Under the pieces are notes generated by a model. The model did no database searches and was not told the DNA's origin. It saw only the letters and a program-made list of their open reading frames with translations. A stretch of 64,000 nt of DNA from the IMG/VR virus record IMGVR_UViG_3300046660_000488, positions 514,293 through 578,292 of that record, one strand, 5' to 3'. Position 1 is the stretch's first letter. Every line of letters begins with the position of its first letter. Shown here one piece after another: positions 1,220 through 2,555 of this stretch. The translations under genes and the position numbers were made by a program.

Positions 1220-1259
1220 GGCCTCTCTTCAACCTCCAACCGTCCCTCGATTGTTTCGT

Positions 1260-1334
1260 GGTTCATTAGCTCAGCGGTAGAGCAATCGCTTGATAAGCGA
1301 TAGGTCGCTGGTTCGAATCCAGCATGAACTACCA
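1260..1334 (+). tRNA. tRNA-Ile(GAT)
   Basis: Cloverleaf, loop TTGATAA, TTCGAAT T-loop, encoded CCA. Confidence 0.95.
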
Positions 1335-1365
1335 AACAGTCGAGAGACAACCCCGAGTACTTTGT

Positions 1366-1439
1366 TCTTCTATAGCTCAGCCCGGTAGAGCAATCGCTTG
1401 ATAAGCGATAGGCCGTAGGTTCAAATCCTACTGGAAGAA
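1366..1439 (+). tRNA. tRNA-Ile(GAT), no encoded CCA
   Basis: TCTTCTA/TGGAAGA acceptor, loop TTGATAA; acceptor stem extended by flanks. Confidence 0.85.
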
Positions 1440-1457
1440 CAAAGTACTTGGGTCCAC

Positions 1458-1532
1458 GGGCCTGTAGTTCAACGGGAGAACGTCTGCATTACAAGCAGAA
1501 TGTCGGGGGTTCAACTCCCTCCGGGCCTACCA
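1458..1532 (+). tRNA. tRNA-Val(TAC)
   Basis: Cloverleaf, loop ATTACAA, CCA. Confidence 0.9.
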
Positions 1533-1737
1533 AAATACTGCTTGACAACGGTTCAACCGAACTTTAGGCAAGCAACCGCGCTCTTCGGGAAGCTCTCTTT
1601 GCTTACCGGACGGATTCCAAAACCTACCATAGGTGCGGAGTCGTGTAAAGGGGCCGGGGTCTTTGACATCGTTGATTTGCGTAACGAATTGGTCGGGCTT
1701 TACCAGAGCCCGGCCGACTTCGGGGACGTGTGTTTGA

Positions 1738-1809
1738 TGAGGGATAGTTCAGCGGTAGAACGCCTGTCTCTGGAACAGGATGTCGTAGGTTCGATCCCTA
1801 CTCCCTCAT
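1738..1809 (+). tRNA. tRNA-Gln(CTG), no encoded CCA
   Basis: TGAGGGA/TCCCTCA acceptor, loop CTCTGGA; 16-bp flanking extension. Confidence 0.85.
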
Positions 1810-1830
1810 CAAACACACGTCCCCATAGGT

Positions 1831-1906
1831 TCGGGGGTAGTTCAGTTGGTAGAACGGCAGTTTTTGGTACTGCATGTCGAAGGTTCGAGTCCTTCTCCCC
1901 GATCCA
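1831..1906 (+). tRNA. tRNA-Gln(TTG)
   Basis: Cloverleaf, loop TTTTGGT, CCA. Confidence 0.9.
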
Positions 1907-1928
1907 AACACTCAGTATTCATCCTTGT

Positions 1929-2014
1929 TGGGGAATGGTGTAATGGTAACATCCCGGCCTTTGACTCCGGAGACCGAGAAGGATTTGTAGGTTCGAGCCC
2001 TACTTCCCCAGCCA
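1929..2014 (+). tRNA. tRNA-Gln(TTG) with long variable region
   Basis: TGGGGAA/TTCCCCA acceptor, loop CTTTGAC, 16-nt variable region, CCA. Confidence 0.85.
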
Positions 2015-2043
2015 GCATGAATATTGAAGACAATGTACTTTGA

Positions 2044-2120
2044 CGCGGAGTGGAGCAGTCAGGTAGCTCGTTTGGCTCATAACCAAAAGGTCGCGGGATC
2101 GAAGCCCGCCTCCGCATCCA
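2044..2120 (+). tRNA. tRNA-Met(CAT), initiator-like (C1.A72)
   Basis: CGCGGAG/CTCCGCA acceptor, loop CTCATAA, T-loop ATCGAAG, CCA. Confidence 0.9.
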
Positions 2121-2129
2121 AGTACATTG

Positions 2130-2360
2130 AGGCCGCGTAACAAGAGAGTGAAGCAGTGATGCCCCGTCATCTGTACCTGACGGGGAGGCCAGAAACAGAC
2201 CGTGCATACGCCCCACGGTCTCTAAATATGGAACACGGACCCACTGGGGCCGTGCGGGAGCCAGCACGACCCGCCGTGGTCTAAGTCCGTAAGGGGCAGA
2301 AAGCGGCACACCCGGTACTGGCGGGTAACCTATTTGGTCGAATGACCATCACCTTTTTTT
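2130..2360 (+). ncRNA. Candidate structured RNA of unknown family
   Basis: Dense helices 2162-2169/2178-2185, 2197-2204/2214-2221, 2234-2238/2250-2254, 2269-2275/2320-2326; no convincing ORF. Confidence 0.4.
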
Positions 2361-2437
2361 GCGGGGTGGAGCAGTCCGGTAGCTCGTCAGGCTCATAACC
2401 TGAAGGTCGTGGGTTCAAATCCCACCCCTCGCACCCA
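2360..2437 (+). tRNA. tRNA-Met(CAT), fMet-like body, bulged acceptor stem
   Basis: GCTCGTCAGGCTCATAACCTGAAGGTC core; the 3' acceptor strand needs a 1-nt bulge; CCA. Confidence 0.85.
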
Positions 2438-2455
2438 ATTGTCCATGTGCTTCGT

Positions 2456-2532
2456 CTAGGCGTAGCGCAGTCTGGTAGCGCGCCTGCTTTGGGAGCAGGA
2501 TGTCGCAGGTTCGAATCCTGCCGCCTAGACCA
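2456..2532 (+). tRNA. tRNA-Pro(TGG)
   Basis: Cloverleaf, loop TTTGGGA, CCA. Confidence 0.95.
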
Positions 2533-2555
2533 AGCACATGGACTTTCACCTACGG

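Follow-up and report, generated by a model that had tools for sequence, protein, structure and literature searches.

Long leader-trailer helices clamp a subset of tRNAs in huge soil phages and may act as stalks for precursor processing

The complete IMG/VR virus record IMGVR_UViG_3300046660_000488 (hereafter G000), a huge phage genome of 578,292 bp with direct terminal repeats, carries within its last 64 kb (positions 514293–578292; this stretch of 64,000 nucleotides is referred to as the window) an array of 24 transfer RNA (tRNA) genes on the plus strand, called by ARAGORN at window 1260–6044. Six of these tRNAs are enclosed by a long helix, termed here a clamp, in which the 5' leader pairs with the discriminator, the CCA end and the 3' trailer. 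This leader-trailer helix is an RNA-level element kept by purifying selection as a structure and endowed with a sequence consensus, a 12-bp box adjoining the tRNA, and confidence in this conclusion is high. The clamp is most likely a previously undescribed signal for excising these tRNAs from their precursor. The leading explanation, still a tentative one, is that the precursor duplex marks a tRNA subset in huge soil phages and would be cut as a processing stalk.

The extent of each clamp was measured by fixing positions 1 and 72 from the acceptor stem and reading the leader backwards against the sequence that follows position 72. Measured this way, the acceptor helix of six window tRNAs (starting at 1260, 1366, 1738, 1929, 2044 and 2456) is continued by 13–18 positions exactly in register (-1:73, -2:74 and onwards), while the remaining 18 score no more than 1.5 and are essentially unpaired, in line with the original prediction that the later tRNAs of the window have no such helices. 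The same division holds throughout the genome, where 15 of 69 tRNAs score at least 9.5, the other 54 score at most 2, and nothing lies between; a score of at least 9 arises with a shuffled leader with P = 1.5e-4 per tRNA, which rules out a chance origin. All 15 clamped units have the cloverleaf plus clamp as their minimum free energy (MFE) fold, to which the clamp contributes -14 to -36 kcal/mol. The six clamped window genes have standard anticodons and Rfam scores of 50.4–74.7 bits, above the RF00005 gathering threshold of 29 bits.

Evidence that the helix is maintained as such comes from relatives of G000. Scans of viral contigs with a 386-residue open reading frame (ORF) lying upstream of the array, and with a 27-nucleotide (nt) piece of the tRNA-Gln body, yielded no close relative. 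A pattern combining the box with a T loop matched six IMG/VR loci, on contigs of 415, 480, 561 and 608 kb and one fragment, and had only two matches in 185,579 prokaryote genomes. After all tRNAs of each record had been located, clamps were counted on 9 of 52 scanned tRNAs in the 415-kb relative G001, on 4 of 35, 6 of 53 and 5 of 55 in the further huge phage contigs G002, G003 and G004, respectively, and on 3 of 56 in the cultured Sinorhizobium phage Phosso; phages Atu_ph07 (0/23), XacN1 (0/27) and T4 (0/8) have none. Clamp scores are bimodal in every genome that has clamps. The arrays of G001 are collinear with those of G000, with 75–80% identity within tRNAs, and the same genes are clamped (Ile, Gln-CUG, Met, Pro, Arg-ACG and Arg-GCG) or bare (for example Val, Arg-CCG, Asn and Ala) in both. 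The Gln-CUG ortholog is likewise clamped and CCA-less in G001, with a different arm sequence; an exception is Gln-UUG, clamped at window 1929 in G000 and unclamped in its sole G001 copy.

In 12 ortholog comparisons, 88 pairs were unchanged, 62 had undergone compensatory double changes, 6 had changed on one side without loss of pairing and 10 had been lost or gained, whereas sliding the partner by 1–3 positions as a control gave 7–13 compensatory changes against 36–58 lost pairs. RNAalifold, applied to 18 units from four genomes, returned the cloverleaf with a 12-bp extension; on this structure the clamp and acceptor helix is 98.5% paired, 17 of its 19 pairs have changed on both sides, and none of 500 shuffles reached as high a value. 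Covariation of the flanks in homologous arrays, the check put forward with the original prediction, thus gave a positive answer, and supports its view that the helices are selected as structure. Soil sequencing runs (X2–X6) contain relatives at about 95% identity, assembled as low-depth contigs over the clamps. Among the differences listed, none of the substitutions affects an arm, and three indels are located immediately beyond the ends of arms (L001 12520/12525, 12643 and 13320, corresponding to window 1227/1232, 1350 and 2027); these variants agree, weakly, with structural conservation.

Next to the tRNA the extensions share a consensus, the leader reading 5'-G-A-U-G-U-G-Y-U-U-U-G-N and, after the tRNA, the trailer N73-C74-H75-A76-A77-R-Y-A-C-A-U. 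Counted over 42 clamps from six genomes, position -1:73 is paired in 40 and G-2:C74 is found in 34, U:A stands at -4:76 in 38, at -5:77 in 34 and at -8:80 in 33, and base-pair preferences within the box are position-specific. Pairing amounts to 95–100% at positions 4–12 and decays beyond. Extensions are 11–26 positions long (median about 15) and never shorter than 11, so that together with the acceptor stem of 7 bp they form a helix of 18–33 bp, or, with the stacked T stem included, of about 24 bp or more. A sharp minimum of 11–12 bp combined with position-specific pairs looks like the footprint of a protein. Arms of different clamped tRNAs cross-pair over the proximal 8–10 positions, while distal arm sequences vary between neighbouring clamps that have the proximal box in common. 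The earlier argument that each pair of arms differs in sequence, and hence did not arise by duplication, therefore stands for the distal parts and the compensatory changes, and fails for the proximal 12 bp, a shared consensus also present in other huge phages and in Phosso. A pair of boxes with a tRNA-sized spacer occurs in G000 only around tRNAs, chance matches aside; two matches away from tRNAs, at genome positions 44029 and 562285, have no clamp fold and were set down to chance.

The six helices of the window were all found where the original prediction had placed them or close by, its shorter spans being subsets of the full extents. All lie on the plus strand around tRNAs called by ARAGORN. 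The first tRNA-Ile(GAU) (1260–1334, Rfam 74.7 bits, CCA encoded at 1332–1334) has leader arm 1242–1259 and trailer arm 1331–1348, joined over 18 positions with two mismatches and one G.U and paired in the MFE fold; its trailer arm comprises A73, C74, an unpaired C75 mismatched to C at -3, A76 and the trailer. A second tRNA-Ile(GAU) (positions 1–72 at 1366–1438, 71.6 bits) is held by 14 continuous bp between 1352–1365 and 1439–1452, and does not encode CCA, its 3' end reading ACAA. For tRNA-Gln(CUG) (positions 1–72 at 1738–1808, 67.3 bits), again without an encoded CCA (3' end UCAA), 16 perfect pairs between 1722–1737 and 1809–1824 produce a 23-bp helix inclusive of the acceptor stem. The 86-nt tRNA-Gln(UUG) (1929–2014, 50.4 bits, CCA encoded), which has an enlarged variable region, is clamped over 17 positions with two mismatches and two G.U by arms 1912–1928 and 2011–2027. 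Encoded CCA is found also in tRNA-Met(CAU) (2044–2120, 56.5 bits), which has an initiator-like C1.A72 mismatch and arms at 2031–2043 (box AUGUACUUUG-A) and 2117–2129 pairing over 13 positions with one mismatch, four compensatory changes distinguishing its G001 ortholog; and in tRNA-Pro(UGG) (2456–2532, 70.2 bits), where arms 2441–2455 (box AUGUGCUUCG-U) and 2529–2543 pair over 15 positions with a C.C mismatch at -3/C75, and clamped orthologs in G001, G003 and G004 have compensatory changes.

This inventory confirms that the fully continuous helices are those of the CCA-less genes, Ile-1366 and Gln-1738. In the other four clamped window genes, which do encode CCA, N73 and C74 are paired to the leader, a pyrimidine faces C75, and pairing resumes at A76. 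All four well-formed CCA-less tRNAs of G000 are clamped, and over five genomes CCA is not encoded in 18 of 39 clamped as against 22 of 225 unclamped tRNAs (P = 3e-7), an enrichment that is subject to the ascertainment discussed below and in which register errors may account for some of the unclamped genes called CCA-less. In clamped tRNAs it is invariably C75 that has been replaced, by A or U (CAA or CUA), C74 being kept in 41 of 42 and A76 in 40 of 42. An A or U at position 75 has its pairing partner at -3 in 15 of 19 clamps, and a C at position 75 faces a G at -3 in only 6 of 23 (P = 0.002). Since pairing occurs here mostly with A or U and seldom with C, while the neighbouring positions are all paired, it is a G:C pair at this one position that is avoided. 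The earlier claim that the helices bury CCA or coincide with its loss is thus supported.

How such a precursor might be matured can be considered against what is known of RNase P, for which pairing between leader and RCCA is an anti-determinant, even 2 bp lowering the efficiency, and A(-2)U(-1) the optimal leader (PMC9433436; PMC10731613). Unclamped G000 leaders have A-2 in 31 of 54 cases and U-1 in 32 of 54, as opposed to G-2 in 13 of the 15 clamped ones, and we infer two classes of tRNA in this phage, one tuned for direct RNase P cleavage and the other locked. In the proposed processing-stalk mechanism, locking the leader and RCCA end in a stable helix would leave RNase P and 3' trimming unable to start, and it is implausible that RNase P would open a lock of 12 or more bp. 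A double-strand-specific endonuclease would cut the stalk near the acceptor end first, after which RNase P or residual trimming, together with the phage CCA-adding enzyme, would finish the ends. G000 does encode a nucleotidyltransferase of the CCA-adding type, and a stalk cut followed by CCA addition would explain why clamped genes tolerate the loss of an encoded C75.

The likeliest candidate for this endonuclease would be host RNase III, preferred because the phage encodes none. Searches of G000 gave no match for RNase III, dsRBD, RNase E/G, RNase P RNA, RNase Z-type metallo-beta-lactamase, RtcB or TROVE, and a dedicated nuclease would therefore be the host's or belong to an unknown family. 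Of the enzymes named in the original prediction, a phage nuclease would thus have to be of an unrecognised kind, and host RNase III is plausible. RNase III acts on a substrate of about 22 bp with cuts offset by 2 nt, between which lie two pairs that are preferably G-C (PMC6212723). Catalysis is blocked by G-C at the pair adjoining the scissile bond, where the T7 R1.1 site has U.C (PMC1540722). The E. coli enzyme also takes part in T4 tRNA maturation (PMC4810235). The clamps have the duplex of about two helical turns (20–22 bp) expected of an RNase III stalk, being 18–33 bp long; their flanks pair around the mature RNA, and the helix is kept by compensatory substitutions. If RNase III were centred on the coaxial stack formed by T stem, acceptor stem and box, with 12 bp to either side, its dyad would lie at the acceptor end, the central pairs would be -1:73 and the conserved G-2:C74, and the flanking pair would be -3:75, where G:C is avoided. 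A comparison of the box with the determinants of RNase III, a qualitative one only, finds G:C at -2:74, avoidance of G:C at -3:75, and A-U pairs next to it.

A more radical form of the stalk proposal, and an improbable one, dispenses with RNase P altogether. Here a dimeric double-strand-specific nuclease, be it the RNase III of the host or a box-reading phage enzyme of unrecognised type, would find 12 bp of T stem and acceptor stem on one side and the 12-bp box on the other, and would cut at -1/+1 and at C74/N75. The 5' end would be mature as soon as it was cut, and the 3' end, left at C74, would be completed by the phage CCA-adding enzyme. Such a pathway would explain the invariant C74, the freedom of position 75 to be C, A or U while avoiding G:C, and the decay of CCA in clamped genes only.

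Several points weigh against a processing stalk cut by RNase III. The relatives were found by a pattern that requires the box, so that part of the consensus and of the CCA-less enrichment reflects ascertainment, units having been picked for their clamps and three G001 genes located via the box; register, synteny and compensatory changes are free of this effect. None of seven related phages encodes RNase III, and the enzyme is assumed to be that of the host. A nucleotidyltransferase is present in six of the seven related phages, among them the clamp-less Atu_ph07 and XacN1, and is therefore not specific to clamps. The fit to RNase III is a qualitative one, based on rules for the E. coli and B. 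subtilis enzymes as given in the literature and not on a scored matrix. Finally, a separate family of clamps on tRNA-His in freshwater arrays, described below, has G:C at position 3, so that its avoidance there is not universal.

Among the alternatives, the clamp might be purely a timing or storage device, an anti-determinant of RNase P and of 3' exonucleases. It would keep a subset of precursors stable but immature, and make maturation late, slow or ordered along the polycistronic transcript until RNase P eventually unwinds it, with no dedicated cut. Precedents exist in E. coli, where leader:RCCA pairing slows RNase P and where stem-loops flanking the valVW tRNAs enforce the order of processing (PMC9433436, PMC10731613). 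The G-2 of clamped tRNAs, set against the optimal A-2 U-1 of unclamped ones, agrees with this idea, as does the presence of clamps on the first one or two tRNAs of several G000 and G001 arrays. However, a stability of -14 to -36 kcal/mol far exceeds that of the 2-bp pairing known to be opened by RNase P, and a mere delay would need neither a fixed minimum of 11–12 bp, nor a position-specific box, nor a retained C75 mismatch. Moreover, several clamped tRNAs (e.g. Ile, Tyr, Ser-CGA) are the sole gene for their anticodon. A timing function is considered unlikely.

Slightly less probable is a role in folding, in which the unit-specific distal arm would serve, in dense arrays of near-identical tRNAs, as an insulator or 'zip code' that pairs each tRNA's own 5' and 3' ends, stops domain swapping between neighbours and shields the 3' end from exonucleases, leaving processing to ordinary host enzymes. 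The divergence of distal arms between neighbours sharing a proximal box is what such a code would call for, and 14 of the 15 clamped G000 tRNAs lie beside another tRNA of the same amino-acid specificity (Ile/Ile, Tyr/Tyr, Ser/Ser, Arg/Arg, Gln/Gln). But so do about 70% of unclamped tRNAs, which leaves a weak association, and the proximal sequence, the 12-bp minimum, the C75 mismatch and the link with CCA loss go unexplained. The clamp would, in addition, block the very pathway it is meant to rely on, occluding both RNase P and the single-strand-specific RNase E.

An element acting as DNA is very improbable. In this scenario the inverted repeats would be recombination or homing sites that move 'tRNA cassettes' between phages, with single-stranded DNA hairpins resembling integron attC sites, and it draws on the occurrence of one box around tRNAs of many identities in distantly related huge phages, on an HNH endonuclease ORF within the array, and on two contigs binned to bacteria of the candidate phyla radiation that hold a boxed CCA-less tRNA-Gln nested in fragments of another tRNA-Gln. 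Yet no target-site duplications were found, direct repeats outside the arms being at chance level, and the conserved end of the repeat is the inner 12 bp adjoining the tRNA, not the outer end. The strands are also unequal, with G.U outnumbering A.C within helices (39 vs 10) and a leader rich in U and G facing a trailer rich in A and C (U:A 217 vs A:U 102; G:C 144 vs C:G 77). The helix is always in register with the acceptor stem and always includes the tRNA's own C74 and A76, and clamped orthologs keep their places in syntenic arrays. Strand asymmetry, inner-end conservation, lack of target-site duplications and built-in C74 and A76 together point to a structure of the transcript, which a symmetric DNA site or a transposon end does not fit. 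Transposon-like terminal inverted repeats and attC-like hairpins were rejected on the grounds of the missing duplications, the conserved inner end and the excess of G.U over A.C. The two contigs just mentioned, L177:100-330 (minus strand) and L178:3940-4310 (plus strand), are binned as Saccharibacteria and Paceibacterota (66% and 46% GC, respectively) and carry the boxed tRNA-Gln(UUG) between partial copies of the second tRNA-Gln, whose CCA-bearing 3' end lies about 150 nt downstream in L178; the arrangement could reflect nested insertion, tandem decay or mis-binned phage DNA.

Two further RNA elements were discarded, a bacterial Y RNA (YrlA) acting with Rsr, whose best hit, extending over two adjacent tRNAs, reached 30 bits where the gathering score is 69, in a genome without a TROVE match, and the archaeal bulge-helix-bulge or split-tRNA helix (two 3-nt bulges, 4-bp helix), given that the only recurrent irregularity is the 1x1 mismatch at -3/C75 and that an RtcB ligase was not found, no search having been made for the splicing endonuclease family. 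The timing, folding and DNA-level alternatives each account for part of the pattern, but none of them covers at once the minimum length, the box, the C75 rule and the link with CCA.

The processing stalk has a well-known counterpart in the RNase III stalks of ribosomal RNA (rRNA) operons (pre-16S, pre-23S), which are likewise formed by flanks pairing at long range around a mature RNA, into a helix long enough for RNase III and kept by covariation (PMC10250234, PMC4810235). Removal of the clamp, as of the rRNA stalks, would presumably be the first processing step. Unlike those stalks, the clamp encloses a single tRNA, continues its acceptor stem coaxially, incorporates the discriminator and CCA, has a 12-bp box of its own, and is found on only 10–20% of a genome's tRNAs. 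A second likeness is to the leader:RCCA pairing of E. coli pre-tRNAs (G-2 U-1 or G-2 G-1 leaders), which inhibits formation of the active RNase P complex and whose two pairs, N-1:N73 and G-2:C74, are the first two of the clamp (PMC9433436). The E. coli extension is limited to 2–3 bp and is unwound by RNase P, however, whereas the clamp runs for 11–26 positions, is worth -14 to -36 kcal/mol, skips C75 and enters the trailer. Leader-trailer pairing beside the acceptor stem influences RNase P and 3'-end processing in eukaryotic pre-tRNAs and mascRNA as well (PMC8457004, PMC10731613), but these helices are short, have no common box, and act with La, RNase P and RNase Z in another domain of life.

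Phage T4 provides a comparison closer to home, although by the same measure none of its eight tRNAs has a leader-trailer clamp. The RNase III site of T4 is a separate structure upstream of tRNA-Gln. Like those of the clamped phages, the T4 tRNA cluster is a polycistronic array. Some of the T4 genes are CCA-less and hence rely on CCA addition, a homing endonuclease gene lies inside the cluster, and the host RNase III is involved in its maturation (PMC4810235).

A different set of clamps came to light in unrelated freshwater metagenomes, in whose tRNA arrays the Ile anticodon arm is common and whose matches to that arm were taken as a background set of 1475 tRNAs. In low-GC arrays of this set (L020, L025, L027, L045, L048, L070 and others among L008–L127), 20 of 61 tRNA-His genes are clamped over 13–18 positions. 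Like the phage clamps, these are in register and have undergone compensatory changes, among them a CCU in place of CCA that is met by A in place of U in the leader; unlike them, they follow another consensus, have both G-2:C74 and G-3:C75 fully paired, and are confined to tRNA-His and one Tyr-like gene. In 10 of 16 distinct versions position -1 is U in place of the usual encoded G, and several have CCU for CCA. They appear to constitute an independent family of such elements, which suggests that the leader-trailer clamp principle is more widespread.

The genome in which the window lies has 59% GC and 69 tRNA genes, and its protein set includes a phage-type DnaB, helicases, ribonucleotide reductase and virion proteins. 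Its nearest named phages, at 33–42% protein identity, are the jumbo phages Sinorhizobium Phosso, Agrobacterium Atu_ph07 and Vibrio 2.275.O, and the top nucleotide match of the window array is XacN1. Just upstream of the window a second array is transcribed divergently from the first (G000:C1:507963-511330, minus strand; L001:4964-8331), with Arg, Leu, Met, Lys and Trp tRNAs. Clamps are found on its first two genes (Arg-GCG and Arg-ACG) and on Leu-UAG. In each of the two divergent arrays, as in the corresponding arrays of G001, it is the promoter-proximal genes that bear clamps. A sigma-70 promoter scan called no promoter. A promoter-like motif (TTGACY, 18 nt, ATAAAT) is repeated on the plus strand at window 893–930 and 2736–2772, upstream of a small ORF (1006–1146) and of Asn-2798, neither copy being called by that scan, and a terminator-like hairpin with a U run at 1183–1217 ends about 25 nt before the first clamp. 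Between the two arrays lie an ORF with collagen triple-helix repeats (E = 1e-22; L001:10038-10976, plus strand, equal to G000:513037-513975) and, after it, the 386-residue ORF, which extends into window 1–845 and has no homolog but itself among 5.8 billion proteins.

Within the window array, an ORF of about 182 residues on the minus strand (4305–4853) has CxxC pairs and a weak HNH_5 match (E = 0.005), and recalls the homing endonucleases of the T4 (segB) and T5 tRNA regions. Directly after the last tRNA, an ORF at 6083–7171 (plus strand) resembles a single-chain phenylalanyl-tRNA synthetase; its class II core domain F (E = 4e-35) and weak FDX-ACB anticodon-binding domain correspond to the monomeric, mitochondrial-type architecture, and it adjoins the array in G001 too. 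Uncalled tRNA fragments between genes (T-arm-like at about 2575–2600; a T arm, acceptor 3' strand and CCA at about 3205–3250, plus strand) are probably decayed tRNA copies within the array. Besides the 86-nt tRNA-Gln(UUG), an 88-nt tRNA-Asn(GUU) at 2640–2727 (plus strand) is oversized, and is called by ARAGORN only, with no Rfam match at E <= 0.1; Phosso also has oversized Asn genes, which are clamped. Elsewhere in the genome, two adjacent tRNAs with CUA anticodons (amber suppressors, labelled 'Pyl' by ARAGORN) are found at G000:C1:109999-110155 (minus strand; L003), and XacN1 likewise has two annotated suppressor tRNAs side by side, a hint that phages of this group may reassign or suppress a stop codon.

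A literature search aimed at such long leader-trailer tRNA clamps found no description of them. What appears to be new, relative to rRNA stalks and to 2-bp RCCA pairing, is a long, box-bearing, in-register extension of a subset of tRNA genes that is conserved across huge phages. These phages carry up to about 70 tRNA genes, and the processing of such dense arrays is essentially unstudied. The clamp splits the tRNAs of a phage into two classes, those with leaders optimal for RNase P and those with a long leader-trailer helix, and its occurrence in the cultured phage Phosso, which infects Sinorhizobium meliloti, makes its function accessible to ordinary genetics and RNA end mapping. If the clamp is indeed a nuclease signal, it would constitute a new rule of bacterial and phage tRNA maturation, and would explain both the loss of CCA from phage tRNA genes and the retention of a CCA-adding enzyme. 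It could also mark a point where the phage governs its own translation supply or frees it from control by the host.

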